The notes beneath the pieces are model-generated. The model had not been told where the DNA came from and ran no database searches. It saw only the letters and a list, made by a program, of their open reading frames with translations. This document shows, piece after piece, positions 37,586 through 62,423 of a DNA stretch of 64,000 bases (the first letter of the stretch is position 1; each line of letters begins with the position of its first letter). The stretch covers positions 62,001-126,000 of the forward strand of contig MU626268.1 of assembly GCA_025603075.1 (NCBI GenBank). Direction: 5' to 3'. The translations under genes were made by a program, and so were the position numbers. The stretch comes from Neoconidiobolus thromboides FSU 785 (lineage: Eukaryota; Fungi; Entomophthoromycota).

Positions 37586-39349
37586 ATATTTTTTTCTATA
37601 ATGCTTAACAAAAAAATCAAAATCAAAATCTAAACTATTATTTATTTTATAAATTTCTTTAACTACATAATATAAAGGCTTTTGAAATTTAAAATGATTT
37701 CCTGTATTTGCTTATATATTAATCTTTATAAGTTTTCTAAATAAAAGCTTCTTAAATATTGAATTAATTAAACAGTTTCCTGCATATACCAAATTATGAG
37801 TTGATATTTCAAATAAATAATGAGAATGAATTTTGTTTATCATCATATTATTTTTTAAATATAAAACATCAAATCCTAATACTGATATAACTTGTTTGTC
37901 ACAATAGTTTAAATTTATTAGATCTAGCTTTGTTTCTATTTTTATGTTTTGTTTAAAGTTTGAAATTATTCTATAACTTTTATTATTTGATTTTTTGAAT
38001 AGGTTTACTAACTATATTTTTTCAAATATTAATATAAAATTCATATAATTTATACAACTTTTTTATTTGAAAACTCTTTTATCTTTGTTTTATTTTTTAT
38101 TGTTATATCTATCTTATTTTTAAATAGTTTTTTCTAACTGTATACTAGATGCATATATCACACAAATCTGCTTTTTTCGCTGGGTTTTTAAAATTGTCTA
38201 TTATATATTCAGAAGACGTTGACTTAGCTACTGCTTTACCTTTTGAATTATTAAAATATTTGTTATACACTATTTTTTCTACTCTTATTCGATATATATA
38301 TTATCTAATAAATATTTATTGTCATTTTGTTTTTATTAAATTTTAGTAAAATAGATGAATTATCAAGTAAATATTACAATATCACTGCATAATTTTTGTT
38401 TTTGTAACTATATTTTATAAAAATATAGCATATTTTTTTATAAATTCTAATATAATACCAAATAAGTAAGTTGTTTTATACATTGTTCATAGAGTTGAAG
38501 GTTTTAAATCATTTGTGCCAAACTTCTGTATGACTTTCAATCTTTCAATTACATTAAAGAGCACCTCTTTTTTTCTTTTATTAAAGGTTTATCCCCTCTA
38601 ACATTAGAATCAGCCCTTTTTTAGCTACCACTTCTATAGTATGGCTCATCTATCAATAATTTAAAAGCTAAGCTATAATTTATCTAAGACAATTATGTTA
38701 ATAAAAAGATATCTGCAAGGATGGCAGACTCTCTTTAACAGAGCATTTTACCTCGTTTCTTTAAGTGTAAATATTTTTTAAGGGTTTAGAGCTCCTAGTG
38801 TCACTTTTTAACTCCAGGATTGAAACTCTCAGCTTCAAATCGGTACTTTCGCTGATGTAAATTGTTCTCTTGATTGTTTGCTGCTTTCTCGCTCTTAATT
38901 CCTTGCTTATTAATTTTCTTTCCTCTTATTAAATGAATAAAACACTACTCTAGGGGATAAGAATAATAATTTTTAGGTGGAAATTAAGTAAAATTAACTG
39001 TAACAGCAAATTTTTTTATTTATAAGAGTAAAAGTTAATCTCATGTAAAAGATCTACTGCAGCATTTTTATACCTTTAACAATTTATTTGATATTTCCGC
39101 CATAATAAAACCGCCTTTGATGAAAATTAAATATTTTACACTGCAAATACACAATGATAACTCATATAGATAAAAATTACACAATTCTTTCTAATTACTT
39201 TATTCAGAAGAAATGGTTGATATTCTTTTGAATTATGTAAACAGTGCAGATTCAAAATCTCCAAATATAACAATTAACCTTAGTATCTAAATAACAAAAC
39301 ATGCTCAAGCTAGTATAAAGCTCTTTGACTTTATTTCATTTGTATTTTG

Positions 39350-39822
39350 TTAACCACATTCATTATGAACTATACATTGGCAACAATGATAAGCAGTCAT
39401 AGGATTCCTACTAGATAGATTAATCTGATTAAATAAATTACTATCGTCTAAAAGCATATACGGCGATTTATTTCCTTTGTAAAAAAGTGAAATTATAAAC
39501 GTAAGTAATGTCATAGTGATTATTATAAAGAAATCAATCAGGCCATACCACATAACATTGAACGTAGCAAGAGAAAGAAAGATATAAATCAAACTTCTTC
39601 CACGAGGAAACATATAAAATTTCAAGTGCTCAAGATGATGCAATTGTAAAATAGGTATTTCATATGCTAATACAAAATGTGATAGAATCTACCGTAAAAC
39701 AGATAATATTACTCCATGTCCATAATCCTAAAAATAGTACTTCATTTTAAATGCACTTACAAGTACCTCTAAACCAACAATAATATTGACGAAGGATGAA
39801 AAAATCTTAGTCTCTTAGACAT
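39350..39822 (-). pseudogene. TVP15/COPI-associated-like intronless copy with two in-frame TAG stops
   Basis: ATG at 39822: MSKRLRFFSSFVNII...YYF*DYGHGVILSVLR*ILSHF..., in frame with ORF 39350-39643. Confidence 0.8.
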
Positions 39823-40647
39823 TGTAATCTAAATATAGAGTACAAAATATAAGATAAAAGGCTTCATAGCTGTATATAGTATTTCATTCAAATACATAAT
39901 TAACCTCAATTCAAATCAAAATAATTTTTTATAAACATCTCACATGTCGCAATACAGTATTATTAATATTATACCCTTTTATCTTTATTCATTTCACTCG
40001 TATGAGTAGATGATAGTATCTCTTCTAGTTATAACTAATGTTCTTATAATTAATTACACTTTAATTAAATCTATTCGTTACTTCTGTAAATAAAATATTC
40101 TGCTAATTTTGATTAAATGGAAAAGCTTAAACGTCTTTATTTAATTGTAGACTCGCATGCAAATAATACTAATATTTATCTTTTTTAATTAACGTATTAG
40201 CATAGATATGAAATTGACATAAATATTATTTCTATTTCAATCTTTCTGTTGAATTCTTAAATGACTTTAAAAATTATTTCTGCTCCTTCTGGTATTGGTT
40301 TCTTTTTCTACCATTGGTGGCTTTTTAACGTGATTTCAAACATCAGCATTAGTAGTATTTGATTAGAATAATATTACTTTATAAATAATTTTAAATGTTA
40401 AATTTAGAATTCCAAGAGCCGAAAATAATATATATATCCTTGTATAGTTCAATGGTGTTAGTCAAACTATTAACAACATGATGTTCCTCATAGATCTTGT
40501 TAAACTAAATACTCTTAATCATAATTTGAACATATAGTAGAAATTATCCAAGTTGAATCAAATAATTAGGTATTTTTTGAAAGCAAAAGGTATAGTAGAA
40601 TGTCACATAATCTCTAGATATTTTTTATTTACTAAATAAGAGTATTT

Positions 40648-40745
40648 GGGAATATATTTTCTTGTTTAAGAATTTTACTAACAACCTTTCGGCTCAAATA
40701 GCGCTTAAAAAACGGAAAAGTAATGAAACCAAAAAAAACATCCCT
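40648..40745 (+). mobile_element. MITE copy 12
   Basis: TSD ATTT/ATTT. Confidence 0.9.
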
Positions 40746-41089
40746 ATTTGTTATCAGATTAGTGCTTACTTATGTCAAAAACTTGTGTATCTCCTTTAAG
40801 ATCCTCTATATAAAGCTTTATCATAGTAAGTGACAAATACATGTATATTTATATTACTTTTATATCTTCAAAATGTATACTTTTGACATAAACTATTCGT
40901 TAGAGCATATTACATAATAAAGCCTATTGTAAAATTCAAAATTTATGACATGGGTTCAATTAATAAAGATTCTTAGCTATTTCGATATTAATTTAAAACA
41001 GCTAATATGGTATTTATTTCTAAATAAAATAGCCTTGAAAACGAGGTAGATGGCCATAAAGGTAGTCTCAAAAAAGGATGTCTATCTAT

Positions 41090-41186
41090 GAGGATGCTTT
41101 TTTTGGCTTCATTGCTTTTTCCATCTTTTAACTGCTACTTGAGTAGAAAAATTGTTGATAAAATTCTTAAATACAAAATACATCCC
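41090..41186 (-). mobile_element. MITE copy 13
   Basis: TSD CTAT/CTAT; GAG terminus. Confidence 0.88.
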
Positions 41187-42009
41187 CTATGCTTTTATTA
41201 ACAGGGATACTCTATATAAATTTTTTTACAAAATAGGTGAAGATGCTTCCTTCTGCGATTTTCAACACAATCATCACGAATATTTTTATACATGCCATCA
41301 TCTATGAATTAATTACAGTGAGAAAAGAACAGGAATTTAGACTTTTTTTGTTTTGATAGAGTTAATCTAGGAAAAAGGACTTAACAACAGTTAAGAAGGC
41401 AAAAATACATACTGGTTCTTTAAAAAAGGGCACCAGGCATAACAGATGTATCAGATGTATTAAAAAAAGACTAACTAATTAAAACCCCATCAAAAAAAGA
41501 CATACATCATATAAAGTCCAAAACTGGAAGTAATTCAAAATAAATTATTACTGTGTAAATTAGATAGCTAATTTTGCAGAGACTTTGAAACATGTTATTT
41601 CAACGATTGGAAGCATAAACTTTGCAAAGAGCTCAAATAATATATTCTAATGTAGTAAGATCAAACTACTTTTAAAAAACGATCAAAGGGAATAGACTAA
41701 AGAGATAAAAAAGCGGCATAAAGCGGAATAATAACTTATTAAATCTTAACGAATTAAAGGATAAGTTAGATGAAAGAAAGGGATTCATATTTATACAAGG
41801 GTTGTCTCAAAAGGATTTGTAAGAACACAAGGCGGAAACGCTCCTTTTCCCAAAAATATTAAAGGTAGGAGAGGGGATCACCCAGAAATGAGAATTTCAT
41901 TTGGTTTTTATGTTCTCTATTTCATTTATTTAAAACAAAAAAAAACCAACTATATACATGACTGTTAAAATTATAGCTAATCTTCCCAATTAGTTAATCG
42001 GTTAAAAGC

Positions 42010-42520
42010 TAAAAAAATTTATGCACGTTTATATAACTTTGATACTTACTTCAATTGGATTTGACAAAGCATCATGACCAATGGAAGTAGTTTGATAGTA
42101 AGGAGGGGCAGATCCGAGCTAATTATCAGTAAGATAATCATCCTCAATTGGCATATATAGCGATTCATTTTCTTAATAAGAGTATGAGGTTGTAAATATA
42201 TTTACTGTAGCAATATCTGCTGTAGTGATATCAACAAAGTCATATCTAATTTCGTGGTTCAAAGAAATCGAAAGCAACCTATACTTTGAAATTCTTTGAG
42301 AAAAAGCATTCAGAACCCAAAATACTTTAAATGGTGTTAGTAATCTTACTTGGGCATAAATACAAAATGGTTTTAAGAATAAATAGAGTATATCCTAGAG
42401 TACTCATACAACTGCATCGATAAAGTTAGATATATTCAAGTATACTTATAACTAATGACCCATCAATAATAACTCTAGGAAGTGCTGAGAAAATTATTCA
42501 TCTTCTATTCTTTAGATATT
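42010..42520 (-). pseudogene. TVP15-like intronless copy, heavily decayed
   Basis: ESLYMPIEDDYLTDN*LGSAPPYYQT...SNPIEVSIKVI matches the C-terminus of 45187-45684; N-terminal IIDGSLVISILE. Confidence 0.7.
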
Positions 42521-43021
42521 ACTTCAACATAAAAATTGTTTGTTTCACGTTATATACACTATTTTAAAGGCTAAGCATTAATCTTTATATCAATGTAGTT
42601 AAATTCAACAACCGTTTCATATAAATATATCCTTAATTTTATGATTGGGCATCATATACTTTACTTGGATCAGCTGTAGTTTTAATCAGTGTATATTTTA
42701 AAATATTTAAATATTTAATACAGCTCTTAAAATTTTATAGATTGCTTTTAACCTAGCTTTACTTTTACTTAGTTCAACCCATCGAAATTTTAATAGCTCC
42801 TAATCAACTATAATAACTAATATTGTTAAATGATTATATCAGCATTTTATAAAGACAATCAAAAACTTATTTACAGGTCAAAAATTAGGTTGATAGCCAT
42901 CCAAGTCGGATTTTGCTTGTGGTCTATTATTACGAATTGTTATAAGATTACTTGGAAATTATTCGAAAAGTAACTTTTCGTTAAAATTTAGAATCCTAAG
43001 AGCTGATAGTTATAAATAGAT

Positions 43022-43118
43022 GGGGATGTATTTTTGTATTTAAGAATTTTACTAATAGTTTTTCCACTCAAATAGCGCTTAAAAGATGGAAAAGTAATGA
43101 AGCCAAAAAAACATCCTC
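43022..43118 (+). mobile_element. MITE copy 14
   Basis: TSD AGAT/AGAT. Confidence 0.92.
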
Positions 43119-43427
43119 AGATGCTAATCTAAATAGTTACATAGTAGTAGTTTTGTCACTTTAATATAAATATTATCAATAAGCTATTGGGTCAAAAAAA
43201 TTGTCATGAAGATATTAATTAGTATATAATTTTATCTTAGATTTAAACATGTTTCTTTAAAAAATTCTGCAATTTTTCCTATCACTACAATTGAAGACTG
43301 TACAATAACAGACGCTAGCATAAACAGTAACTCATATCCTATGTTTTTAAATCATTGAAAGTTATTTAGCTTAATTTATACTTTTTAGTTTTTATTGAAA
43401 GCTGATTCTAATATATGGAAAAAATGT

Positions 43428-43524
43428 GGGGATGTATTTTTGTGTTTAAGAATTTTACTAACAGATTTTCCACTCAAATAGCACTTAAAAATGGAAAAAA
43501 TAATGAAGTCAAAAAAACACTCTC
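43428..43524 (+). mobile_element. MITE copy 15
   Basis: TSD ATGT/ATGT. Confidence 0.92.
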
Positions 43525-43549
43525 ATGTAATCTTTATTTAAAAAATATG

Positions 43550-43930
43550 CTTTACAGGTTTGACTATTTTATCTCCTTATGAAAAAATATGTATACTTGA
43601 ATAATAAAATGAAAGGTTTTGTTTAAATAGTCTCATATAATTTTAGCAATTGATTAAATGATAATATAAGGAAAAATGTCTACGTTAAACTTCTTTCAGG
43701 AGGAAACATATAAAATCTGAAATATTTAAGATAGAATTGGTTGATTGCTGGTATTTCAGACAAAAATACAAAACGAGCTGAAAATAGCGTAAAATGGGAG
43801 GTAGAATACCATGTCCAGGATAACTGTGTCCTTAGTAATAATAATATCATGTTTTATATACGTTCATAGCTAATGTTGTACTAATGATAACATTAGAGAG
43901 TGATGAAAAAATTGTTAATGCTTCAAACAC
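43550..43930 (-). pseudogene. TVP15-like intronless copy, decayed and 3'-eroded
   Basis: LTIFSSLSNVII...GHGILPPILRYF...FVFLSEIPAINQFYLKYFRFYMFPPERSL, with stops and a frameshift. Confidence 0.7.
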
Positions 43931-44974
43931 TTTAAGTTTAATACTTAAAAGATGAAATTTCTTTTGTAGCTATTTATAATATTTTTAGTAACTATTTGAT
44001 TAATAGCAGCTTAATGTTAAAATAAAGATTTCATCATCTTACTTCACATAGCACAGCCCTTTTTAGGGATATAGGTAATTTTATTTTGTTGTATTCATAT
44101 TAAATCATTGATTTCCTTTTTAAATGTATCCATTATAACTAACAACTATTTATTTGAAAAGAACTTTTATGAATGTAGAAAAAAAACTATTCATTTATTT
44201 ATATACAATGACATTTAATAGTTTTAATGAAATTTAAATGCATTTGGCCCTCTCTATAAATGGTGATAGTGTTTTTCTCTTGTAAATACTGCATTTTGTA
44301 TATATTCACTAATGACCCCAGTCCAATAATATCTTTTTGCGGTTTTATGATGATCCCAAATGAAATAATATTTTGTATTTAAAGTTTTTTGAAGTTCGTT
44401 GCTTAAGTCTCAGATAATTTTAAATAGATTTATAATTTTCGATCCAGAATGCCAAGGACCACAAAAATAAACACGGTTAATTCAGCAATATAAGGGATGT
44501 TGACCAGAGTATTTATAATCTGAAAAACTTTAAAAACTTAGTATGAATAAAAAACTTTATAATATACCTTATAAAATAATTTCATTTGAAAATACTTACT
44601 ACTATTGTACTTGCGAAAGCAAAATAAAGAGTGAAATATAAAATACTAAAAGGAGATATAAGGGCAGGAAAAATAGAACATAAGTCGAATAAGTAACAGA
44701 AAGTAGTGTTAATTTATGATATCCTGGTTTCGAGATAGATAGGCTATATAAAACGTTTTTAAATTAGCTTAGTACAAGTCAACAGATACACAAGAACAAG
44801 TAGTAAAAGGTAACAAGAAGCCAAAGGTGCTATTAATAGTAACTTAAAACTATAAAGTTGGTAGAAATTTATTTAAACATCATTTTAAATAATTTATAGA
44901 TCATTTATGGTTTTAAATATATATCACCTGATAATATCTGCCATCAAATTTTAACTTGTAGGGATTTGGAAGGT

Positions 44975-45071
44975 TTAAATGGATTTTGTGCTTAATAATT
45001 TTACTAATAATTTTTCCGCTCAAATAGTGCTTAAAGGATAGAAAAAGTAATGAAGCTATAAAAATACCCCC
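44975..45071 (+). mobile_element. MITE copy 16, left end decayed
   Basis: Family body and ...ATACCCCC-ATAT right end. Confidence 0.8.
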
Positions 45072-45186
45072 ATATGTTAAATTGTAATATGTATTTATAA
45101 TTATGCAAAAATTTGTATCACAACTTTTAAAAATAAAATTGGTAGATAAAAGAACTACGATATACAAATAACAATCTTTATTTAAA

Positions 45187-45684
45187 TTAAGTTGATACAA
45201 CCTTGATACATGCTTCGGTTGGATTTGATGGATTCCCGTCATCAGTAGAGAAGGTTTGATACGAAGGAAGAGCAGACCCAGGACTATTATTAGGTGGTTC
45301 ATTTTCATTTATAGGCATATATGGCGATTCCTCCCCTTTATGATATAATGATATTATAAAAGTAATCACTGTAATGATGCCCAGTACAATGATATTGACA
45401 ATACCATACCATATAAGACTAAATGATGAAATAGAAAGGAATGCATACATTAAACTTCTTCCAAGTGGGAACATATAGAATCTAAAATGTTTAAGATAGA
45501 ATGGTTTTATAAGGGGTATTTCAGATACCAACACGAAGTGAGCCAAAAAATAACGTAAGATGGATAGTACAATACCATGTCCATAGTCATAATAGTATTG
45601 ACGAGTTTCAAAGACACTTATAACTAGTACTATACCAATAATAATGTTTGCCAATGTTGAGAAAATTCTTAATCTTTTAGACAT
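45187..45684 (-). CDS. TVP15/COPI-associated-like multi-pass membrane protein, intronless, 165 aa
   Basis: Intact ORF with several hydrophobic segments; the LVSE...FYMFPLGRSLMY pattern resembles the E...F...GRG.FY signature of the TVP15/COPI-associated family. Family assignment is by eye. Confidence 0.7.
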   Translation of the reverse strand: MSKRLRIFSTLANIIIGIVLVISVFETRQYYYDYGHGIVLSILRYFLAHFVLVSEIPLIKPFYLKHFRFYMFPLGRSLMYAFLSISSFSLIWYGIVNIIVLGIITVITFIISLYHKGEESPYMPINENEPPNNSPGSALPSYQTFSTDDGNPSNPTEACIKVVST

Positions 45685-46933
45685 TGAAGTTTAATATTGA
45701 TGTGTTTATTTTTTAAATAAAGTATTAAAATAATTATTTATCCTTTATGATTATTTATACCTTTTTTTGGAACAATCTAATCAATGGCAACTTGATGTTA
45801 AATTGAAGGTTTGTACACTAATCTATATACGCAGCTTAATTAACATATAGTTAATTTCAAGTTTATATTTTACATGCACATTAAACCATCAATTTCCTTT
45901 TTAAATATATTCACCCGTGATTATAAATAGTGCTTATGTACAAAATTTATGAGTTCATTGTATATGATGTAGCTATTTCATTTATATAAAAGGAGATTGA
46001 AAAAAATTAATGAAATTACCTACGTTTAGTCCCCTTTATAATTGACAACCATATCCGCCTTTTGTAAGCCTTGTTTATGATATTATTCATTGATGGTTTT
46101 GATCTACTAAATTAATTTTTTAAGCTTCTAATATTTGGAGTTTATATAAGATGGCTATTTGTATTTAAAGCTTTCTTAAATGTTAATTAGAGTATTGTGA
46201 TAATGTTGGTTTTATAATTAGCTGTTTGAATGCCAAGAGTCATAAAAAATAAATAAGGATTAATTTGGTAATGTGCGGTATTAGCTTTGATGTTGGTAAT
46301 ATCAAAGTTCTTAATAAATTCATATCTGTAAAACTATTACAAGCTATTGAAAAGTATTTCTTCCAAAGAACTTTAATTATTTAGTCTCAGGCATCCTATC
46401 TATGTAAAAAATGAAGTGGAGTAGGATGTGTTTAAAAGGGGCCAAAACTGCAGTAAAGGTAAAAGACGAGTGGAATAATAGAAATCAGCTAACTGCAACA
46501 ATCTACAACGCCCTATTTTTGAACAAGATACCTGGTATCAAGAGGTTTTGAATTAGCTTTGTTCAAGTTAACGTAGACAAAAAGGAATGAATAAAAAACA
46601 ATAAAGGGATAAAAACGATATCTTTGAAAACTTGAAGGCACATAAATTAGGCTTAGATATATTATGAATGATTGTAAATAGTTTATAAAACATCATATAA
46701 TTATAGATCTATACTATGTCATTATCATTTATTGTTAAAGTCAAAAGGATTAACTATTTCATACCTTTACGCTACCGTGAGTGCTTTAGCTAGACTTTAA
46801 GTGTTTTACATATTCTAGAATGTAAAAATTTAATTTCTCATATATTTTGAAATTTAAAAAAAGCTTACATCGTAATATTCAAGAGTGACCTTGTAAAGAA
46901 ATTATAATACATAAATAGTAAAGTTTATTTAAA

Positions 46934-47431
46934 TCAAGTTGACACGATTTTGACATCTATTTCGTTTGGAATCGCTAATGGATTGCCATCATTAGGTAAG
47001 GGCTGGTAACAGGGAAGAGCAGAGTTAAAATTACCATTAGATGGGTCATTGTCTTTTACAGGCATATATGGCGATTCCTCCCCTTTATGATATAATGATA
47101 TTATAAAAGTAATCACTGTAATGATGCCCAGTACAATGATATTGACAATACCGCACCATATAAGACTAAATGATGAAATAGAAAGGAATGCATACATTAA
47201 ACTTCTTCCAAGTGGGAACATATAGAATCTAAAATGTTTAAGATAGAATGGTTTTATAAGGGGTATTTCAGATACCAACACGAAGTGAGCCAAAAAATAA
47301 CGTAAGATGGATAGTACAATACCATGTCCATAGTCATAATAGTATTGGCCGGTTTCAGCTATACTAATAGCTAATACTACACCGACAAAGATGTTAGCAC
47401 ACGTTGAAAAAGTCCTTAATCCTTTTGACAT
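46934..47431 (-). CDS. TVP15/COPI-associated-like protein, intronless, 165 aa
   Basis: Intact paralog of 45187-45684. Confidence 0.7.
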   Translation of the reverse strand: MSKGLRTFSTCANIFVGVVLAISIAETGQYYYDYGHGIVLSILRYFLAHFVLVSEIPLIKPFYLKHFRFYMFPLGRSLMYAFLSISSFSLIWCGIVNIIVLGIITVITFIISLYHKGEESPYMPVKDNDPSNGNFNSALPCYQPLPNDGNPLAIPNEIDVKIVST

Positions 47432-48199
47432 TTTAAGTTTGATACAAAAAATTGGTTTTTTATTTAATATATATACTATTTTATAATATTATTTAGCCAA
47501 TAATAATTAAACATTAAATCTTTGCCAAGGATTTGAATTTAAAAAGTCAGTAATTCCGAGTAGGGGTTAAAAAAAGTGAGTAATTCTTAACCTTTATGTG
47601 ATTCAATTTATTCGCTATTTTATTTGGATATTGTCACAAGCCTTTTGGTTCTATATCTTATGTTTTATTTCAATAGCCAGCATATCTCTGAACTTAACAT
47701 TCATTTCAATAATGCCAAGAGATATCTGGATTTATAACTGATATTCTTTAAATCCTATATAGTGTTACTAAATATCTTTTTTATTTCAGTAATTCATTTA
47801 CTTTTAGAAATTCTAAAATTGAAAAACATGAGAGTTCAATTTTTAAAACACATTCTTATGCTATTTTATACAACTATACAGTATTAGTTAACTCCTTGTT
47901 AGTTTCAAAAATCCTAAAAATTATTATAAACAAAATTTTAAATATAAAAAAGACTGGATAAGATTAAAATTTAATCTACATTTATGCAAATTTAATCAAT
48001 TTGTTGTGTAGTAATCCTACTATAGCTATATCTCTTGCTATATATCTACTACCAAAATTGAAATTATTTACATTTTATAACTTTAACTATCAAAAATCTT
48101 GAATTGCTTTGGTAATTTATTTTTTTAGAGTACATGTATGGCTTTAACATATCTAATGGATTAAACATAGTTAAAAATCTATTTTACAAGTTGAAATAT

Positions 48200-48293
48200 G
48201 GTGATGTATTTTTTTGTTTAAGAATTTACTAGCAAGTTTTTCCACCTAAATAGTGCTTAAAAGATAAAAAAGTAAACCAAAAAAAACACCCCC
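48200..48293 (+). mobile_element. MITE copy 17
   Basis: TSD ATAT/ATAT. Confidence 0.9.
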
Positions 48294-48372
48294 ATATGTC
48301 TTCATACAAGAGCAAATTAAGTTAATGTCAAAATACTAAAATTTATTAAGTTGAGCTTGTGCGATTTGATGT

Positions 48373-48869
48373 TTAATTTGATATGATTTTGATATCTACT
48401 TCTTTTGCGATTGCCAGAATGTTTTTTTCATCAATCTTCACTTGATGATAAGGAAGAACAGGCTCTGGGCTGTTATTAGATATACCGTTCCCATTTATAG
48501 GCATATACGGTGATCCAGTTCCTTTATGACGTAATGCAATTATGAAGGTAATTACTGTAACGGTTCCTGTTATAATGATATTAATAACACCACATAGCAT
48601 AAGGTTAACGATGAGATAGAAAGGAACGTATACATCAAACTTCTTCCAATAGGAAACATAAAAAAGTTAAAACGATGAAGATAAAATTCCTTTAACAGAG
48701 GGATCTCTGACAAAAATAAAAATAGAGCTAGAAAGGAACGCAAAATTGATAGTACGATATCATGACCATAATCATAATTAGGTACCCTGGTTTCGGCTAT
48801 GCTTGTAGTTAATACAATATCAACGATGAGGTTAGCGATAGATGAGAAAATCCCAAAACTTTTAGACAT
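48373..48869 (-). pseudogene. TVP15-like intronless copy with one -1 frameshift
   Basis: ORFs 48570-48869 and 48373-48600 join into a full-length paralog if one T is restored near 48607. Confidence 0.75.
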
Positions 48870-50669
48870 TATGAATTACTTTATGAGACCGAAAACTTAC
48901 CTCATGGTTGACTATATATATAGTTTTATAAGAACCAATTAGCAAATATTACTTAATATTTGGCTTTTGCCAAGGGTTTAATCTTTTATAAATCAAGTAA
49001 TTAACTTTTCACACTAATGTACTTTAATGTATTATCATTACTATAACTATTAATTCTGCCCTAATCAGTTGAATATTATATAGTTTGGTTTAGTATTGAC
49101 ATAGCTCAAAGTTGATAGTTGCTTCATTAATATAAGAAGTATATGGACTTATAGTTAATGTGCATAATTTAAACTATACAAAATAATATTTAAAAATATT
49201 TAAAATAGTGTCTAGTTTGATCTATAAATACACTCAAATTTTAAGAGTAGCATTTTAATATTACAACATGATAATATATTTGATATATTAAATCAAGCCC
49301 GCTGAAAACATCATCTAGTATGTTAAAATGAATGTTTAAAGACTATATAATATGCTTATTTTAAAGTTGTGTTATATATAGTAAGGGATATTAAAGCAAT
49401 GCTTTTAAATATTAGAATCTAGTCAGAGTATACTGGATTATTTTTAGGTGTGATTATAAATGACTAGGCTTTAGAATAAAGAACAAATTTGGTAAATTTA
49501 TTATCAAATTAAGTGAAAAAACTTATAATCTTTGAAATTATAAAAGTAAATTTGCTAGAATAGGTTTTAATTGGCACTTTTTTAAAATAAAATTTATCCT
49601 TCTATTTTTTTAATATTTTTGTTTTATATTTTTATCCTATAATAAAATAGTTTATATGCATGTTAAATTTTTATGTATATAGTAAATATTTTTGAAGCAT
49701 TTGAATGTATCAAAATATAAATACAAGTTTTACCAGATCTCCTTGTTATTTAGTCTATCAATATTTTTAATTAGATATAATAAAAACCTAAAATTTAGCT
49801 AATACTTTTTTTATTTTTTTATTTTTTTTATATAACAGTTTAAAGTTAATATAAACAGCTGCTATATTAGATTTTACGTCATATGTTTATATAGTATTAT
49901 AACTGATACTACAACACTTTTAAACATAATATGGGCTTATTTCAAAACCAATAAAGTATGGTTACTCCCCTGGTCTATTAACTCCTCATCCCTATCATTC
50001 TTATAAGCTTGAGCCTTTTGTCTCTATTTTTTATTCTTTTACTTCTTAACATTATTAGTTAGATAAAATATTTGGGCTTTTAAGCTTTTAAGAATCTAAA
50101 AAATATCAAAAATGCTTCTTTCAGCTTCGTTTGAATTTTTATAAGGGCTATTTTTAGTTTTAGTAAAGTTGTCACTTTGAAATTCACTTTAAAATTCACT
50201 AAATTAATAATATATATCTTGGTAAATAAACCTTATATACAATAAGTGGGATTTACAATGTTTTAATTATTAAATAAATCAAGTGATGCCCATATAAAGT
50301 TTTTGAAATTACATAAAAGTTCAGTTTTAAATAATAATCTCACGCTTTGATTCAGCCCCCTTTTTAAACGTTATGTAAACAAAATTAAATTTCAATTAAA
50401 TACCAAAATTTTTTATTTAATAAAGAATCAGATGAGAGGATCTAAATATTACAGACAAACATTAAAGGATAGATAGGATAGAGATACAAGTAGCAATTAA
50501 ATAAAAACATTCTTTCGATACTAAAAATTAACAACTTTAACTTTTTTACTTTTCTTTTTTTACCTTAATAATTTACGTATCGATTCTATAAAATTAATTA
50601 TTAGTTACTATAAAAATAAAATAGAGAGTAATATTACTTAATAAATATTTCAAAATAGAATAAAATGGC

Positions 50670-51810
50670 AACATGAGTTGCGTTAACAATAAGCGATAAG
50701 AGTAGGGCCGATTCCTATATGTTTGTACAAAAATCAACCCCATTACTATGAGATGCACAGCGGATTTCTTTAAAACATTCTAAAAATTTATATTAATAAT
50801 TAATATACCACCATATATGAAAAAGAAATAATTACAATAGCTAACTCTTTCCAATTAAATTCTTTTTTAGGTACATGTGCTACATTCAATTCCTTTTGAA
50901 TAACCTCCAACCTTTCATTTAAAGACGCAACTTGAGTTTGAAGTGTTTCAAGTGCATGTTCGGCCTCAGGTGGCAATCTACTTGGATATAATAAATTCCT
51001 ATCCAAATTTTGGTTATCTGGAGGACTATAAAAATTATTTGCACGTACAGTGCAAGTAGACATAGTAGCTCCATCGTCAGATGAATAATCAAGTTCATCA
51101 GAACTAAGGGGATCAAGTGGAGTATCTTCAATTGAATTAACAGAAGGTGTTTTAATAACAGGTATACTATTTTCCATCCATCGATGATTTATGTTCAAAC
51201 TTAAATGAGTTAATGGTGGACTGGTATCATTCATATCTTCTGGGCATGAAAAATAGTCTTCTTGAGAATTAGAACTTTGTGCTGATAATGGAAGTGAACG
51301 AGGTTCAGGAAGCTAAAATTTGAATTAAAATTTAGATTTATTTACTTAAATATAAGTATACTTTAATTTCGCTAATCCTTTTTCCTCTTTCTAAACTTTC
51401 AATTATATCATAAATAAAAGGTCTGTCCGAATACCTTTTTAACAACTAAAACATAGTTAATTGATACGTCGATTTCATTTTATATAACAATCTACCTGTA
51501 ATACAGCTTTATAATATTCTTCTTGTGCTTGAGAAGGAGATAATGATTGCTTTTTAATTTCCGAGTCCCTATAATAAAATAATGAATTTCATGAACATAT
51601 TGATTACTTAAAGTCATACCATGAAGAATTATTATTATTTGTATTATTTATATTATCTGTTTTTGACTGTAATGATTGATTATAGAATATTTGCAACTTT
51701 AACTTCTCTTCAATAGTAGGTTGAAATGGAAGGGGTAGTTGACGCATAACAGTTAAAGCCTGATCGAATCTTTTTTGAGAATGATAATCTTTTGTTAATG
51801 TGACCATCAT
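50670..51810 (-). CDS. Acyl-CoA-binding (ACB) domain protein with a coiled coil, ACBD5/Atg37-like architecture; multi-exon, 3' end uncertain
   Basis: RFDQALTVMRQLP...FQPTIEEKLKLQIFYNQS, SPSQAQEEYYKAVLQ and LLKRYSDRPF exons; ALETLQTQVASLNERLEVIQKEL coiled coil. Confidence 0.65.
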
Positions 51811-53653
51811 TTAGAAGATGAGAATTAGCAAAGCAAAACTTTTAAAGTGAAACTAAGAGAAAAGGATAACAAAGAAATTTAAATTTTTATAAAATAAAGC
51901 TTGGTTTAAAAGATAAATTTAATACTCTTATTATTATAGTGATTGAATTGGTTTTGATTAGAAATTTGGTTGGGTGAAAATCGCTGCATTACAGCCAATT
52001 ATTTTACCATTTTATAACAAACTTACTTTATTTTTTGATGAGAAATATTTTCTACTAATTTCCCTTTAACCAACTAAAATATTATTAAAGGCATCTCAAT
52101 TTTATTATTGGAGTATCGGATGATCCTTTGATTTTATAACTTGTTGTTTCCAACACATGCCTAATTTTATTTTGTACTTAAACCTTTTCAGTTCTCTTTT
52201 TATGCCTTGTATAATAATCTGATTTTTTATCCCCTGAATCCAAAAATATCCCCAGCTATAAGTTATAACTCTGGGGCAAAATAGAAATGGCTTAATGATT
52301 TTAAAATGAACAAAGTTTCATCACAGCCAATCAAAGCTTCAAATTATATTAAATTGTTGGAATTAGCAGTCACTCAAAAGATTGTTTAGCTAACCATTTC
52401 GTTTTAAAACTGAAATTTATTTAAAACGTTTGAAATTTATTCAAAATTAGAGTTATAAATTTAATTATGAAATTAATTGACAAAATGGTATAAACATGGA
52501 TTTTATTAGCCAATAATGAATCATCTATAATATCTTTATTTAAAAATTATAAGCTCATCATTCCATTCTATAACGACATTGATGCCGTTGACTCTTCATC
52601 TCTTTTATTTTATAATTGCCGAAAGAAATGATAACAATTAACTAAAGTTCAGTACTATTAAGTAAATAAAACTTTTATTATCTATATGTTATAAAATTTA
52701 ACAAATTGCCTCAATAAACTACGATTCTTAATTCAACTACACTTCTTAGTTGTTTACTTTCAATATAAATAATACAAATAAAAATATATAGTTGAGCCAT
52801 TTTTTTTATTTTTAAACTTCTGTTTTTTTAAGGTAAAATAACAATTTCTCATACCCTCAATATTAATTTATTTACAATTTAAGCAACTACTTTACCACTA
52901 ATTTTGATTGTTGTGCTTTAATATTTTTTTGCAAATTAAATATTGACTATCAATCTTTGAGTTGCTTTGCTACATGTGGTTTTAAGATTAAAATCAGTTA
53001 AACTGAGTTGATTTAAATATCAAAAAGTTTTTTTTATAACTTTATAATCAAAATAATAACACCAAGAATAATAGCAAAGGATTTAGCTTATATTTCTTTT
53101 ATTGAGTTTAAACTTTGTACTCTAATTTTTAATATTTAAAATGGATTGCATTTATAGTGCGTTAAAAAAATGCTCAGAGCCTTCATTTTAGAAGCAAAGA
53201 AGTAAACCTACTTTTAAAGCATTAAATTTCTCATCCCTTAATCTTCATTATATCTCAGTCTATTCATTTTATTGATGAAGTTTTATTTATGCACTTAGAT
53301 TTATTGCCCCTTATTGAAATTTATCTACATGAGTTTAAAAACTTAAACTATAAAAAAAACTCCAATTTAGTTTTGTTCAAATTCGAAAAATTCAATTGCT
53401 TCAATTTTAAATAGATAAGTGTGAATTTTTAATACATGGAGCCTTTTTTAAAATTCTTGAGGCCCTTTTGGACAAGTGGATTAATACCTTTTGTATATTC
53501 AATAGCAATTAAACATTACTATAAGAGTGTCAATAAGTTTCAAAGCCTGATTAATCGTCTATGAAATCCATCAGTTCAATTTAGGTATAGGTAATAAAGT
53601 TCCTTGTTCATTATAAAATCAATCTAAGCGTAGTATTTTTCATAATGTTATAT

Positions 53654-53749
53654 TGAATGTATTTTTGTATTCAAGAATTTTACTAACAATTTTTTGATCA
53701 AATAGCGCTCAAAAGATGGAAAAAATGCTGAAGCTAAAAAAACATCCCC
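53654..53749 (+). mobile_element. MITE copy 18
   Basis: TSD ATAT/ATAT; left G-run lost. Confidence 0.88.
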
Positions 53750-54281
53750 ATATAATAAATCAAAATACCAGAAAATTAATGCTAAGCTTAAACAACTCAT
53801 TTAAAATGTTGCATTTTATACTTGGTATTCTATGTCATGAGTTAATAAATAGGTTTTAAATAGATATCAGATATAAGAAATAAAATGTAACTATATAATA
53901 TTTTCAATTTTAAAATTTTATATAGCATTCAAACTTTTATTTCTTTTTAATTTATTTAGTTTGATTAAAGTGTTTAATTGTATAAAAAGTATAGTATTTT
54001 TTTCCAACAAAAGTATACCAAAATCTTTAATAATAAAATTTACAGAACTAAGATATTAAAATTGATAAAAAAACCTAGATTATTATAATTTATATTATCC
54101 ACTTCTATTAAGTCAACTTTAACAGATTTATTAAATATAATAAACACAAAGTTAAACCACAAGAAACTATGCCAAGGTTTAAAAAATAATACTAATTTTA
54201 GAAAATATTCATCTCATTGTGGATCCTTTTTTCTAGAGTATAAAAACTCAAGTTTATTATTCAAAGTCTTAAAAAATAAAA

Positions 54282-55750
54282 ATGATATCTCTTTTATTAT
54301 TTATAGTCATAATATTAATTAGTTTAATTTATCTTGGTAATAAACTATTAAATGAAGCTGCTTTTTCACCATGGTACTATCGATATTTTAATCTATGGAA
54401 ACCAAAATACCCTATTCATGGTCAATGTGAAGAGGAGTATAAGGAAGTTAAAGAAGTATTTAGAAACAGTTTTGAACGTGGTATAGAAGTTGGTGCTTCC
54501 GTAGCAGTTTATAACAAAGGAAAACTAGTGGTAGAACTTTATGGCGGTTATCAAGATTATGAAAATAAGGAATTATTTAATGAAACTACATTAACGATAG
54601 TATTTTCAAGTTCTAAATTTATGGTAAGACTTTTTAACTTTAATAGTGGTTTTTATATAATGAATTTGAATTAATGTTATTGAATTAGGCCAGTGCTGTT
54701 ATTGCTAAATTAGTAGATCAAGGGTTACTTGCTTATAATGAAAAAATATGTACATATTGGCCGGAATTTAGTAACGGTGGTAAAGAAGAAGTAACCTTAA
54801 CCGATTTATTACGTCATGAAGGTGGATTACCATATTTATTAGATCCAGAGCCAGCATATGAAGATGTTTATGATAGTAAAAGAATGAAAAAAATTATTGA
54901 AAATACGACACATGTTTATAATGGAAAAAGAGTACGTTGTTATCATGGAATAACCCGAGGATTAATTTTAAATGAACTTGTTAAATTAGTCGATAAAAAA
55001 GGACGTAGCATTGGACAATTATTTAAAGAAGAGATTAATCCAAAGTATAATATAGAATTTTATTTAGGTTTAGAAAAAGAATATGAAAACCGTAAAGCTA
55101 AATGGTATAATTATCCTACATTAGATGCTTTGACTTTGTTTTTACCTAAGTGGTTAATTGGTAGAAAAGCAGTTAGATTAAATAGAGATACTTTAAAAAG
55201 AGATTCTAATTTAATGAAACTGATGAAATTAAAACTATCTAATGAAAAGGATCTTCCAAATGCTAAAGATATGCTTACAATTGAAATCCCAAGTGTTAAT
55301 GGTCATACTAATGCAAAATCAGTAAGTTGATTTTTAATGCTACATTAGTTTTTTACTGACTAAATCGAATTTTATTAGTTAGCTAAAATAGGTAGCTATT
55401 TTGCAAACAATGGCAGTGTCAATTGTAAAACTTATTTAAGTGAATACACAACTACAGAATCAATAGGTGAAGTAGTTGAAGCATATGATGAAGCTATCTT
55501 ATTAAAGACTGAAATGACTAAAGGCGGCTTTGGAATATTTAAATATAAAGAACTTGAAGAATATTCCAATGTATCCTTTTATGGTTGGGGTGGTATGGGC
55601 GGTAGTTTGATTTTATTTTCTCCAGAATATCAATTCTCATTTGCCTATGTTATGAATGCTCAACATTTAGTTTTGATGAGTGAAGGTAGAGCAGTGGATT
55701 TATTAGTTACTGCTTTTAAAGCTCATGTAAAGACATTAACTAAGAATTAA
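54282..55750 (+). CDS. Beta-lactamase-family (SxxK) serine hydrolase with an N-terminal membrane anchor, 3 exons
   Basis: GASVAVYNKGKLVVELYGG, VFSSSK (SxxK), YWPEFSNGGKEEVTLTDLLRHEGGL, YHGITRG and GWGGMGGS. Introns about 54624-54688 and 55323-55378. Confidence 0.88.
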
Positions 55751-56201
55751 TTTATTTATTTGTTTTAATAATAAATTGTTTCAATGTTTTTAATACTTTA
55801 ACTTATATTATTATTGAAATAGACTTATAATAATAATTGACCAACTTAAAGTTAGTATAAACTTCCAGTAATATGTAATGATAATATAATTCAGGTTAGT
55901 ATATTAATAATTAGCTTTATTTTCACATGCCAATTGCATCATTCTATTGATTTAAAAGGAAGAAACTTATACTAAATGGTAAACTATATCTAATCCAATT
56001 TTAATGTATTAAATATCAAGGGTAGCTCTAGTAATATTTAACATACAATTATTATATCAAAAAAATATTCAAAAAACAAAAACTATAAGAGACTATATAA
56101 AAAAGGATTAAACAGGCTTTTAGGGGGTTTTAATAGCTTATAATACTACTGTTTAACATTGAAACTTAGAATATCAAATTCGAAATATAAAAAGTACATA
56201 T

Positions 56202-56294
56202 ATGTTTTTTGGTTTCATCGCTTTTTCTGTTTTTTTAAGTACTATTTGAGTGGAAAATTCTTAGTAAAATTCTCAAACACAAAAATACATCCCT
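56202..56294 (-). mobile_element. MITE copy 19, one end eroded
   Basis: Family body; ATAT on both sides. Confidence 0.85.
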
Positions 56295-56936
56295 ATATAT
56301 TAATATATTAAGCATATCATGTTTTGGGTTAACCTTATTGAATATTCAGATTGATCTGTAAATAGTATAAATCAAACGAGTGACTATAATTTTGAATAAA
56401 TGCTAACAAACTATGTAATATATTTAATCATTATTTAGATTTAATTCTATACTTTATTGTTTAATTAACATCATTAAAAAATACATTGACTAGTACCAAA
56501 AAACAAGACAAATCAAACATAGGGATTATAAGTAATAAATCAACACAATAATTATAAAACTGTTTATTTATAAAAAAATGACAATTAAAATAAAAAAGCC
56601 AAGACCAAGATCTTCTTTTGCTATCTTAGCATAATAAGTAGATTTTCAAAATACAGATTTTCTTTTGCTATCTGGCTATAAATAATGGAATTTTAGAGTA
56701 TATTGTATGCTTTTCCTAGTAATAAAAAAATAAACCAGGTTTTTTTCTTGGGGAAGGCGAGCTTGTATAAAACATAATCATTGAAGGTTATCGGATTATC
56801 AATATATTGTATCAACTAATAAGTGGTATGACCAAATGCTACAGCAAAAGTAGTAAAAAGCATATTAGAATGTATCAAATAGATCAAAAGTGTCAAAAAG
56901 CCTAGTTTAAGCGCCAAAGGAAGCTAGTCAAACTCC

Positions 56937-57200
56937 AGAAGTTATTAAAAAGTGTCAGTGACCAAAAGAAGCATCAAATAATTACAGTTATATTGTATAC
57001 TTAAATAATGAGAGCTAAATGACAGAAGTTATTAAATACAAGCGATCAAAAAAAGCATCAAAAAATTTGTAATACTACCAAAGCGACCTAAATAGCAAAA
57101 GATTAAAATCCAAGAAGTTATTAAAGAATACTAGAGTAACCAGTAAAGCATTAAACAGCTTATAGTATTACTCAAGCGCCTCAGGCAGTAGAAGAAGAAC
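56937..57200 (+). repeat. Three degenerate ~88-bp tandem units
   Basis: AGAAGTTATTAAA at about 56937, 57024 and 57113, each followed about 30 bp later by AAGCAT(C/T)AAA. Confidence 0.6.
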
Positions 57201-57801
57201 AAATACTGAGTTACCAAGCAACAGAAAGTCAAAAGTCCGTCATAGGGGAGAATTGAAAAACAAAAGTTTTTAATTCCAATAGGTTGAAAAAAATCCTCCT
57301 TTATATACTTTTTTTACTGTGCTTATAAAAAGTAAAACGGATTTTAGTAAGTTGTGTTATCTATGAACCCAACACTTAATTATTATTATTTTATAATTAT
57401 ATGTAGTTAAAAACGTTTTATGTGTGAAAATTGCTATTTATATTATAAATCAAATAGGTATATGTGTAATGTTTTAATTCATGTGGTCGTCCTTATATTT
57501 TACTCTTGTTTTTTGTATTATGCTTCCTTATATTTAGGTTAAAAATAAATATCGTTATCTTTTATCATTCTTTATTAACCAATAATGTATTCTATTCTAT
57601 ATAATATCATGTTTTAAATATAAAATAATAAAGGGATGCATTAATATAAATATTGAACTAGTATCATGATAAAATACACGAACTAAGTAGAGCGTTGTTT
57701 TCTGCTTATTCAATAAATTTTGAACAATTATCATGAGTTATAAGAAAGTTACCACTTTTGAAACAACGCTAATCTTAAGTTTTAAGAATTATAATATAAT
57801 A

Positions 57802-57890
57802 ATGTTTTTTTTAGTTTCACTACTTTTTCCATTTTTTGAGTGTTATTTGAGCGGAAATTTTATCAGCAAAATTCTTAAAAAAATATCCCC
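57802..57890 (-). mobile_element. MITE copy 20, degraded
   Basis: Family body; TSD unclear. Confidence 0.8.
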
Positions 57891-57937
57891 TATTTTGAAA
57901 CTTTAGATTGATTCAAACAAGATTATAGAATATGAAT

Positions 57938-58032
57938 GGGGATCTATTTTTTTGTTTAAAAATTTCGCTATCAATCTTTCCATTCAAATAATGCTCAAGA
58001 AATGGAAAAAGTGATGAAATGAAAACATCCTC
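57938..58032 (+). mobile_element. MITE copy 21
   Basis: TSD GAAT/GAAT. Confidence 0.9.
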
Positions 58033-58085
58033 GAATATTAAAATCATTGACCCTTAATATACTATCTTTTGAATAAATAACGTAT

Positions 58086-58183
58086 GGGAATGTATTTTTG
58101 TGTTTAAGAATTTTGCTAACAAATTTTCCGCTCAAATAGTGCTTAAAAAATGGAAAAAGTAATGAAGTCAAAAAAACACCCCC
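58086..58183 (+). mobile_element. MITE copy 22
   Basis: Flanks GTAT/ATAT. Confidence 0.9.
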
Positions 58184-59769
58184 ATATTTTAACTAAGAAA
58201 TTTGCGTACTTTTATAATTATCATTTAATTTACTTTATTACAATATTGTATTCATCAATAGAAAGGTTAGAAAGCTTTATAAATATCACACAGTAATATT
58301 TTTTATTGAGATTATTACATCATTTTAAGGGATGATTATTGCTTTTAAGAAGATTTTTTGAAAATATTAATATATAAAATATGTTATAATATAAAAAACG
58401 GTCTTATTAAATATATATCAGTTTTATTTAAATCATATAATTCTAAAAAACGATATTACATCATCTGATATCAAATAAGGTTAATCAACTTTTACTATTA
58501 TTTTTTATGTGATGCTGTGTTATCAATAGCTTTGTGAACCTTGTTTTACAATTTGTAACCAATTTCGTATTATAATAAAACAATCATAATGATAAAGTTA
58601 ACTATTTGGATAAAGTTAAGGTTAGATATAAAAACAATTGTATACTGTATTAAGAACGCTAAACTTTAATGAAGCTTTGATAAATTAAGTTATTACTAAA
58701 GTTTTAGCTAAGGTGTAATTTATATAGCTACTCAAAGCTCTCTACACCATTTAACAAAAACTAAAGTAGTTATTATTTCTAGTTGTAATTTGATTGTTTT
58801 TATTAGTTATTTTAATGATAATAGTGTGATAAAGTTACTAAGCTAAAAGCAAATAGGAGGTTTGAACTAATATATTATTTATTAATAGATTAAAGAGACT
58901 ATAAACATCAGCAGGTATATGCTTGTAATTTTTTATATTTTAAGTGCATTTTTTCAAACAAAAGTAATATGTTTATTTCAGAATTAATAGAATATAATAT
59001 GTAATTTTAGTGGAAGATGAGCGAAGGTGAGTATCTAGGGACATCGAGCAAGAAGAACAAGGCATTTATCCATTTGGTACTACTTTTAAGTACTAGCACA
59101 ATTCTAATAGCGTGAGTGCTCTCTTTTAGAATAAAGGATTTTCACTCAAGGAAAATGAAACCCAGAGGAAAAAAGGGAAAGGACAGCTTTGAAATTAATA
59201 TTGCAGAAATTTATATGAAAAATCTAAACAGCTGAAGATAAGAAGAGAGGATGAACACAATCCATTTGATCTTGCAAGGGTTTAGTGACAAAGTTAAAGT
59301 CTAGAATCAAGAACAATGAAATAGATGGAGGGCCTTTCAGAAAGACAGATGCGCACATTAACCAAACATTTTTTGTTTTTTGTCTTCATTTAGTAAGGTA
59401 TTTCCAATCTTCCCATTTGATTGATATCCATGTGTATTCACTTATATTTACTATATTTATAAAAAAACTACTCATAAAAAATGATTTCGGTAAATATAAA
59501 AAACATTATATAATTATAGTTTATAAAAAAGGGAAATGTCATACGTGATAAGGACGTTTATTAAGTTTAGCACCTTGTTAATAACAGTATTGAGTATATC
59601 ATGACCAATTAGTTATATACCAATTATAGTTCAAACCCTGCTGTATAAAATAGGTAATTAAAATACTATGCATTATTTAAACTACTATTACCACAAAATA
59701 ATAAATGTAATAATTAAGGCATTTGTAGATTAATAACAAGATCAAAATAAGTATACAAATTAATCAAAC

Positions 59770-60650
59770 TCCCCAGTATGTCAATCAAGCAAAGATAAGC
59801 TTCAGGTATTCAACATTAGGCTAAGATACATAAGAATAAGCACCTTCTATATAGTTAATAGTTAATAGTCAAGAAGGAAAATTAAAGTGTAAAACATATT
59901 GTCAATTAAAAGATGTTCTAATATCCACACTTTTTAATACTTTTACTTTATTTGTTAATATTTATACTTTGACTTAAAAAATAAGTGAGAGAGTATGAAT
60001 AAATTAATAAAAGAAGGCAAAGTTAAATACCTCAAATTATTTGAAGGTGATGAAGAAGTGTTAAAAAAAGTTCCTGAAATTTATCCTATTCTTATAGTAC
60101 AATTAGCTTTAATTCAAAATTAATAGGAAATGTTGTTGAGAAAAATGGACTATCAGATCTACATAAAGAGTTAGTGGTAACCATCATAACTTAGTATTAA
60201 GTTAAAGCTTATTGATAAGAAATTAAATAAAAATGATTTAAGGTTTATACATTATTTACGTTATATCAAATATGACTTGAATTTAATTTTTAAATTTTCA
60301 AAAAACTTCAACATATAGCCAATTGAATAAATATAAGAGCTTCTTAACTATGCTTACCTTAAGCTATGAGGTAGGTAAAATTAGATTATTTACTGATGCT
60401 TTGACTCATACATCAGTTCGGATATCTTATATCAGATGTTAAACAACCAGACAATCTCTACATATAAATCATTCAAAGTTATATTACAAAATCAAATCAT
60501 CTATAAATCCTATAAAAAAAATAAGAATAATTACAAACTCATTAATCCAGAACGAACTTAATTTAGCGGCCAAATAAAAAATACCAAGAAAAAAAAATAG
60601 AGCTGGATTCTAAGCTTAATCCATTATTACATTGGACCCAGTATTTATTA
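59770..60650 (+). pseudogene. Aldo-keto reductase pseudogene
   Basis: MNKLIKEGKVKYLKLFE...YPILIVQ and VEKNGLSDLHKELVVTIIT* resemble the AKR consensus L.KEGKV+YLGLSE...HPI.A.Q and NG+L...+ELG+.+VAY. Several stops; boundaries approximate. Confidence 0.55.
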
Positions 60651-60734
60651 TCATTTTTAAATTTAGACTTTAGATTATAAAAATTAGAACATTCAAATTT
60701 AATTAATGTTTATTTTTTATTACTTTTCTTTAAA

Positions 60735-61668
60735 ATGAAGACGTTGAATTTCTATTATCTTAATACTACAATCAATATCTCCATATCTATTTTATTGATT
60801 ATAAATGCACTTATTTTATTCAATATAGCTATTGATAATGATAGAAGTTATGAGAACAAAATCCATAGTATTATTATAGCTTTGTTTAGGCTGTAAGTAG
60901 AATCTAATTTAATCAATTGAATATTTATTAACAGTATAGTATATGTGCCGTAACTATTACAGTCTCTGAATTTACTAAGTTGCACCCTTTTTATTTAGAA
61001 TATTTGTATAGCTTTATGCATCCTATTGGAAGAACTTTAAGTAATTATAATAGCTATATAGTTTTTGATTTTATTAACAATTGATTTCTTTAGTTTATTT
61101 AGTGTAAGTTTTAATCCTAAGTTTACATTAGTCGAAATACATTAATCAAATACATAGCTTTGCCATCATATGTTTTAGTTATAGTTGGTGGGGGATAACA
61201 AGCACTTGTAGTATTGCAGTATTAGCGATGACTACTTTATTATTAAATTATAATAAAGGATATAATAAATCACCATATATAAGCAATAAAGCAATAAAAC
61301 AAAAATTAAATTTGAATAATGAATCTACAATTAATCACTCATCGAATAACAGTAGAAGTAACTCAAACATCGATTGGAATAATGATATTACCCCAACTAA
61401 TACTATAACAAACGATGATTTAGGTAGTAATGGAATTAACAGTACACAAGTTAATATTATTGGTAATATAGATTTTGAAAATATTGAGTTGCCTGAATAC
61501 AATAGCATTACTTTTCCAACCCCAGCTGCACATAGCTCTTCAATTACTTTTATTGATTCGGTGCCTAGTGCCCCTACCTCTTCAATTACACCTATCCCTT
61601 CAGCACTAAATAGTTTATCGTATATTGATTCAAAGCAAAGTAACAATTCTAAAAGTTCCAATTTTTAG
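60735..61668 (+). CDS. TVP15/COPI-associated-like membrane protein with 3 introns (259 aa, Asn/Ser-rich tail)
   Basis: Exons 60735-60892, 60940-61040, 61094-61103 and 61158-61668 total 780 nt with GT-AG junctions. The translation aligns nearly gap-free with the intronless copies: HSIIIALFRLICAVTITVSEFTKLHPFYLEYLYSFMHPIGRTLIYLVFAIICFSYSWWGI vs HGIVLSILRYFLAHFVLVSEIPLIKPFYLKHFRFYMFPLGRSLMYAFLSISSFSLIWYGI. Confidence 0.8.
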
Positions 61669-61892
61669 ATTTATAGCACTTGCTATGTTTAATAAAAGGA
61701 TCAGAATGTTATAGATAAATAAATAATATTAATATTATTTCCCAAGCTTTATAAAATGATTTGAATTTGTTAGTTTTTATAGCTTTGAATAATAGCCTTT
61801 CATTTTGAACTTTCAAATATTTTTATTTATTTAGTAATGATAAATTTTAGTATTAAATAATTATATTGTAAGCATTTAATAAATGAAGATAT

Positions 61893-61944
61893 ATTTAAGT
61901 GGAAAGATTGTTAGTAAAATTCTTAAACAAAAAGATACATCCTC
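61893..61944 (-). mobile_element. MITE copy 23, half element
   Basis: TTTAAGTGGAAAGATTGTTAGTAAAATTCTTAAAC...ACATCCTC only. Confidence 0.75.
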
Positions 61945-62324: not shown

Positions 62325-62423
62325 GGGGATGTTTTTTTTTGACTTCATCATTTTTTCCATCTTTGAGCACTATTTGAATGGAAAAATTATTAGTAAAATT
62401 CTTAAACATAAAAATACATCCCC
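62325..62423 (-). mobile_element. MITE copy 24
   Basis: GGGGATGT...ACATCCCC; flanks ACAT/ATAT. Confidence 0.92.

Follow-up and report, generated by a model that had tools for sequence, protein, structure and literature searches.

Introduction

The reverse-transcriptase (RT) model of intron loss predicts that adjacent introns disappear together and that the loss is biased toward the 3′ side of a gene (PMC3652778), and recombination-driven intron loss has been described in Cryptococcus (PMC2395259). Here, a 64,000-nucleotide window of the fungus Neoconidiobolus thromboides FSU 785 (contig MU626268.1, positions 62,001 to 126,000) was analysed; "the window" means this whole stretch. It carries a six-copy array of intronless TVP15-like genes and a plus-strand relative at 60735-61668, labelled W60 in this report, which is predicted to have three introns. 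A sequence-only reading of the window had proposed that a retrogene founded the array, which then entered a birth-and-death process. The present analysis gives good support to a concerted, complementary DNA (cDNA)-templated loss of the introns followed by tandem amplification and decay. Retroposition from W60 was found to be unsupported and is the less likely route.

Gene Family and Gene Structures

The window DNA is AT-rich and eukaryotic, with a GC content of about 25%, and comes from an assembly of 24.6 Mb in 799 contigs, in which the contig of the array and W60 is labelled C11. The assembly was searched with PF08507, with the intact array copy c45, with the proteins P0006 and P0007, and with the profile A1, and 17 COPI_assoc/TVP15-like loci were found. 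The family in this genome consists of two canonical TVP15-type genes (C12 and C27) and a private subfamily of 15 genes for small four-helix membrane proteins. The six array copies and W60 lie on C11. C144 has an intact intronless tandem pair encoding 168 and 166 amino acid residues, 60-66% identical to c45; this contig encodes P0003, an NCBI hypothetical protein from N. thromboides FSU 785, with 100% identity. C355 has a single intronless gene of 152 residues, which corresponds to P0005. The C101 locus corresponds to P0006, C10 has one further gene, and the C116 contig has three genes, named C116 (corresponding to P0007), C116b, and C116c. Searching 5.8 billion proteins by words, with a single protein and with alignment A1, gave only proteins from N. 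thromboides.

As the sequence-only reading had stated, there are exactly six array copies, all on the minus strand between 39.4 and 48.9 kb, of which two are intact, one has a single frameshift, and three are decayed. The count of six was obtained both by tblastn with the intact 165-residue copy and by a repeat finder. The copies are arranged head-to-tail with a spacing of 1.4-2.6 kb, and the similarity among the units at the DNA level covers only the open reading frame (ORF) and 30-120 bp of flank. They align gap-free across all three W60 intron sites, in agreement with the earlier observation that the array reads straight through these positions.

The same three introns were found in five genes on four contigs (W60, C101, C10, C116b, and C116c), in the same alignment columns and in phases 2, 1, and 2. 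In all five genes, exon 2 is exactly 101 nt in length, the microexon is exactly 10 nt, and all splice sites are canonical. The gene models of C101 (199 residues) and C116 (165 residues) agree at every residue with P0006 and P0007, respectively, both of which are named at NCBI. Thus, an independent annotation arrived at the same microexon structure in the case of C101. C12, C27, and C116 carry intron 1 only, with its column and phase unchanged, and their coding sequence is uninterrupted at the sites of introns 2 and 3. The intronless genes, namely the array copies, the C144 pair, and C355, are continuous over all three sites. The 15 genes of the subfamily show just three intron states: all three introns, intron 1 only, and none. 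There is no gene from which intron 2 alone or intron 3 alone is missing.

The three introns that had been assigned to W60 were retained in the present model, while the end of exon 1 was corrected to 60892, in phase 2, from the end of the ORF. Homology was searched exon by exon, and the row used in the alignment and the tree consists of the exon translations joined by coordinates. The four residues between the exon 2 and exon 4 matches on P0006 are those encoded by the microexon. Each intron is 47-54 nt in length, with GTAAGT or GTAATT at the donor site and TAG at the acceptor site. The predicted product has 259 residues, and the tail encoded by exon 4 is long, rich in N and S, and without relatives. 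The predicted splicing of W60 is supported by comparison, since four paralogs share the introns and the microexon and one of their models equals an NCBI-named protein. A search with exon 4 for a multi-exon database protein of W60 gave only the 146-residue ORF of W60 itself. W60, C10, C116b, and C116c are intact microexon genes with no matching multi-exon database protein and were probably missed by public annotation.

Phylogeny and Intron Loss

The tree, with 15 rows, was rooted on the canonical pair C12 and C27. Clade A (support 92/94) consists of C116, C116b, and C116c. Clade B (89/86) consists of C10 with the pair of W60 and C101 (85/86) on one side and the intronless clade (74/76) on the other. 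The latter contains a well-supported group of the C144 pair with the array (98/99). The deepest split of the subfamily therefore has three-intron genes on either side, and thus the three-intron, microexon structure is ancestral. The introns were lost and not gained, as had been supposed.

All three introns were lost on the stem of the intronless clade, a short branch with a length of 0.27. A grouping of C116 and the intronless genes as one clade was rejected by the approximately unbiased test (p-AU 0.002), and thus there were two separate multi-intron losses. In C116, the two 3′ introns (introns 2 and 3) are gone, and the 5′ intron and the microexon codons are retained. The four residues of the microexon are kept gap-free in the alignment in both events. 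Since these codons remained in frame, a single block deletion is excluded for either loss. The joint and precise loss with the 10-nt microexon retained points to a spliced transcript copied to DNA as the template, so that this part of the sequence-only reading was borne out. I infer the cDNA template from this pattern, and loss in place, as opposed to loss at a new site, is likewise an inference.

The mechanism itself is ordinary. The case is neat in that one genome keeps three states (three introns, the 3′ pair lost, and all lost) and in that a 10-nt microexon between two lost introns is a built-in marker of a spliced-RNA template. The family offers a small, naturally occurring test of the RT model for the loss of introns in a fungal lineage that has been little studied.

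Routes of Intron Loss

I give a slightly better than even chance to a route in which a local duplication was followed by in-place recombination with cDNA, which erased the introns, and then by spread at the DNA level. A local DNA duplication would have produced two neighbouring intron-bearing copies, and the cDNA of a spliced transcript would have recombined with one of them in place. The resulting intronless gene would have multiplied by tandem duplication into the six-copy array and dispersed to give the C144 pair and C355. Its copies would then have decayed one by one, with the intact ones held under purifying selection, and W60 would be the surviving neighbour from the sister branch.

An indication of loss in place comes from C116. 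Since this gene retains its 5′ intron, its 5′ part is genomic DNA, and its two other introns must have been removed by recombination in place and not by retroposition. C116 lies 22 kb from C116b and C116c, and W60 lies 12 kb from the array. The chance of the W60-array linkage was estimated at about 0.03, a figure that concerns that linkage alone and takes 8 locus clusters over 24.6 Mb. Linkage at 12 kb speaks for a local duplication of DNA, and for the intronless clade the context tilts towards loss in place. The assembly gave only two RVT_1 matches (C168:40314-40793 and C40:104723-105013), a count that is a lower bound, and retroelements seem scarce in this genome. The C168 match (111 bits) lies within a 1499-residue open frame and represents a source of RT in the genome.

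Several points weigh against this route. Loss in place and retroposition leave identical coding sequences, and the flanks are uninformative at 29-35% protein identity. No neighbour gene common to the W60 flanks and the array spacers was found, and only miniature inverted-repeat transposable elements (MITEs) matched between them. The monophyly of the intronless clade has moderate support (74/76), and W60 as the sole sister of this clade was not formally rejected (p-AU 0.07); the sister of the clade in the tree is the group of C10, W60, and C101. The rooting takes the canonical TVP15 type, which is widely conserved, to be ancestral to a subfamily private to this species. In addition, the splicing of W60 is a prediction, and the database has no multi-exon W60 protein.

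The next candidate is true retroposition, in which the spliced mRNA of a three-intron member would have been reverse-transcribed and inserted as a new copy that gained a promoter and was later amplified and dispersed. I regard it as unlikely. It accords with the lack of all three introns, including the 5′-most, in every member of the intronless clade with no intermediate, with the survival of an intron-bearing sister lineage, and with the presence of at least one long ORF with an RT domain. However, no A run of 6 or more was found within 150 nt downstream of the stop codon of any copy; the sole such run, downstream of c48, begins 157 nt past the stop. The A content downstream of the stops is 0.30-0.41, equal to the background, and erosion with age could explain the absence of a poly(A) remnant. 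Random insertion in 24.6 Mb would place the array so close to a sister-clade gene in no more than a few percent of cases, and the observed proximity runs counter to that mode of insertion. The low number of RVT_1 matches also speaks against retroposition, and the same family shows in C116 an event that cannot be retroposition.

The particular retrogene history of the sequence-only reading is unsupported in two respects. Parentage of W60 was not demonstrated. Together with C101 and C10 it makes up the sister clade, and in the conserved core its identity to c45 is 29%, compared with 35% for C101. Moreover, the retrogene was said to have founded a local array, whereas C355 and the C144 pair, which lie on other contigs, have the same intronless state. 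W60 as the sister of the array and C144 genes without C355 was rejected (p-AU 0.02), and the intron loss is older than the array. It is unlikely in my estimate that the founder was a genuine retrogene that became functional and later multiplied into arrays on two or more contigs. The result would be a retrogene family of a rare kind, expanded and under selection, in an early-diverging fungus that appears to have almost no retroelements. If it were so, the products may be private vesicle-membrane adaptors with SPY/LPxY docking motifs.

Stepwise loss by separate precise genomic deletions, through microhomology or double-strand-break repair and with no RNA template, is less probable still. The divergences are old enough for intermediates to have vanished since, as dS (synonymous divergence) ranges from 0.7 to more than 2 within the intronless clade and the protein identity between the intronless genes and their three-intron kin is 26-38%. 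However, none of the 15 genes shows an intermediate state with only intron 2 or only intron 3 missing, and the stem on which the losses would have accumulated is short. Both events removed the introns flanking the 10-nt exon and left those 10 nt in frame, and it is unlikely that two independent exact deletions occurred twice.

An ancestrally intronless family in which the three-intron genes gained their introns is close to refuted: the tree itself is unrooted, and introns 2 and 3 are absent from C12 and C27 and so must both have been gained sometime before the subfamily radiation, but the column and phase of intron 1 are common to canonical and non-canonical genes, the canonical rooting nests the intronless clade in clade B with three-intron genes in both clades, and the opposite rooting would need repeated gain of identical introns many times, a five-fold parallel gain that is not credible.

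Array Evolution and Flanking Sequences

The dS between c45 and c47 is 0.23, and that between the array and the C144 genes is 0.7-1.2. The ratio of nonsynonymous to synonymous divergence (dN/dS) is 0.17-0.58 among the intact intronless genes. Thus, the intact copies are maintained by purifying selection. Some copies are intact, one is freshly broken, and others are decayed, a mixture that accords with birth-and-death evolution. The sequence-only reading was right in describing the local array in these terms; the array grew by tandem duplication at the DNA level and is decaying.

A MITE of about 100 bp, with a pseudo-ORF like KHYLSGKIISKILKHKNTSP, is scattered through the array spacers and the W60 flanks (Table 1). 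The possibility that C144 and the window share a segmental duplication was tested and rejected; the sole extra DNA match was a dispersed repeat at 36011-36476. This repeat is 465 bp in length and has at least 45 copies in the assembly at about 80% identity.

c47, c48, and C144a have the motif CCTTGGCAA upstream of the ATG, at a distance of about 90-100 nt, and ATTGGCT (reverse CCAAT) and TATAAAA come after it. In the three-intron gene C101, ACCTTGGCAAC lies 78 nt upstream of the ATG; this 10-mer occurs just 32 times in the 24.6 Mb. The presence of CCTTGGCAA in both C101 and the intronless copies is suggestive of a promoter shared by descent, although it is inseparable from ordinary CCAAT/TATA promoter grammar.

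DUF4436-like genes were found near both TVP15-like blocks of the C116 contig (C116:59326-59877 and C116:25610-26140). Since DUF4436 counts 17 loci or more, this proximity may be due to chance. Elsewhere in the window, a weak tblastn match to the array protein at 5254-5697 proved to be the antisense of an N-rich low-complexity gene (5070-6167, minus strand) and does not belong to the family. A run of 490 consecutive N at 15255-15744 may be an assembly gap.

Protein Features

The two intact array copies c45 and c47 score 25.9 and 24.1 bits on PF08507 (COPI_assoc, TVP15), below the curated cut-off of 30 bits, while C12 and C27 score above it (47.8 and 42.1 bits). The match of the array copies spans 113 of the 130 profile positions; residues 11-124 of c45 align with profile positions 6-118. 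A precomputed PF08507 match exists for P0001, P0003, P0006, and P0007. The array copies are thus divergent relatives of PF08507 and not clean members. The four hydrophobic segments seen in the family alignment would fit a four-helix layout. By family membership, the product would be a small four-helix membrane protein of Golgi or endosome vesicles.

The cytosolic tails of clade B conserve SPY[ILM]P directly after the fourth helix and LPxY further on (LPSY, LPCY, LPVY, or LPEY). I take these motifs to resemble docking sites for WW-domain ubiquitin ligases. As a lead only, the tails may serve as WW-domain docking sites.

Table 1. Positions of the genes, exons, introns, repeats, and motifs discussed in the text (window coordinates unless a contig or locus is named)
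Feature	Position	Strand	Description
c39	39350-39822	minus	pseudogene; ATG retained, 1-nt frameshift at about codon 7, in-frame TAG at 39730-39728 and 39691-39689
c42	42026-42509	minus	badly decayed; many stops and frame changes
c43	43653-43918	minus	5′ fragment; about residues 5-89, truncated after about 90; stops and frameshift
c45	45187-45684	minus	intact single-exon gene, 165 residues; P0001
c47	46934-47431	minus	intact single-exon gene, 165 residues; P0002; 80% identical to c45
c48	48373-48869	minus	complete apart from one frameshift near 48600
W60 exon 1	60735-60892	plus	predicted; ends in phase 2; weak homology to paralogs
W60 intron 1	60893-60939	plus	predicted; 47 nt, GTAAGT..TATAG, phase 2; column and phase common to seven other intron-bearing paralogs
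W60 exon 2	60940-61040	plus	predicted; 101 nt; matches P0006 residues 48-80 (E 9e-9)
W60 intron 2	61041-61093	plus	predicted; 53 nt, GTAATT..TTTAG, phase 1
W60 microexon	61094-61103	plus	predicted; 10 nt; with its neighbours encodes I-Y-L-V
W60 intron 3	61104-61157	plus	predicted; 54 nt, GTAAGT..CATAG, phase 2
W60 exon 4 and stop	61158-61668	plus	predicted; start matches P0006 residues 85-125 (E 1e-9)
C10	G000:C10:206652-207259 (L035)		three-intron gene
C116b, C116c	G000:C116:37681-38311 and 38640-39275 (L036)		three-intron genes
MITE	37239-37335, 40644-40745, 41088-41190, 43021-43119, 43427-43525, 44984-45077, 48196-48297, 61886-61969, 62323-62434		
CCTTGGCAA-type motif	47522-47530, 48967-48975	minus	
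CCTTGGCAA-type motif	L008, about 1342-1350		
CCTTGGCAA-type motif	L017, about 2163-2171	minus	
SPY[ILM]P/LPxY tail	45190-45330 (c45, as an example)	minus	also in c47, C144a, C144b, C101, and W60

Comparison with Known Systems

The array copies resemble TVP15 in that they hit the same PF08507 model over most of its positions. They differ in that the subfamily has motifs of its own, namely F/M-x-P-[ILF]-G-R, W-[YWC]-G-I, and SPY[ILM]P after helix 4. As a tandem array under birth-and-death evolution, the locus shows nothing unusual; copies at mixed stages of decay stand head-to-tail, and MITEs lie in the spacers.

Processed retrogenes share with this family the occurrence of intronless copies beside intron-bearing kin, precise junctions, and intact copies under purifying selection. 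In contrast to such retrogenes, no poly(A) remnant was found here, the kin are linked at 12 kb and not placed at an unrelated site, and the intronless state predates the array.

The family differs from described cases of RT-mediated intron loss in two ways. It is a multi-copy family, in which the cDNA donor could be a paralog, and one of its two events took every intron, which alone is indistinguishable from retroposition. On the other hand, the deletions are precise and adjacent introns were lost jointly in both events, as in RT-mediated loss. The 3′ bias, on which the intronless clade is uninformative, is seen in C116 with its 5′ intron kept.

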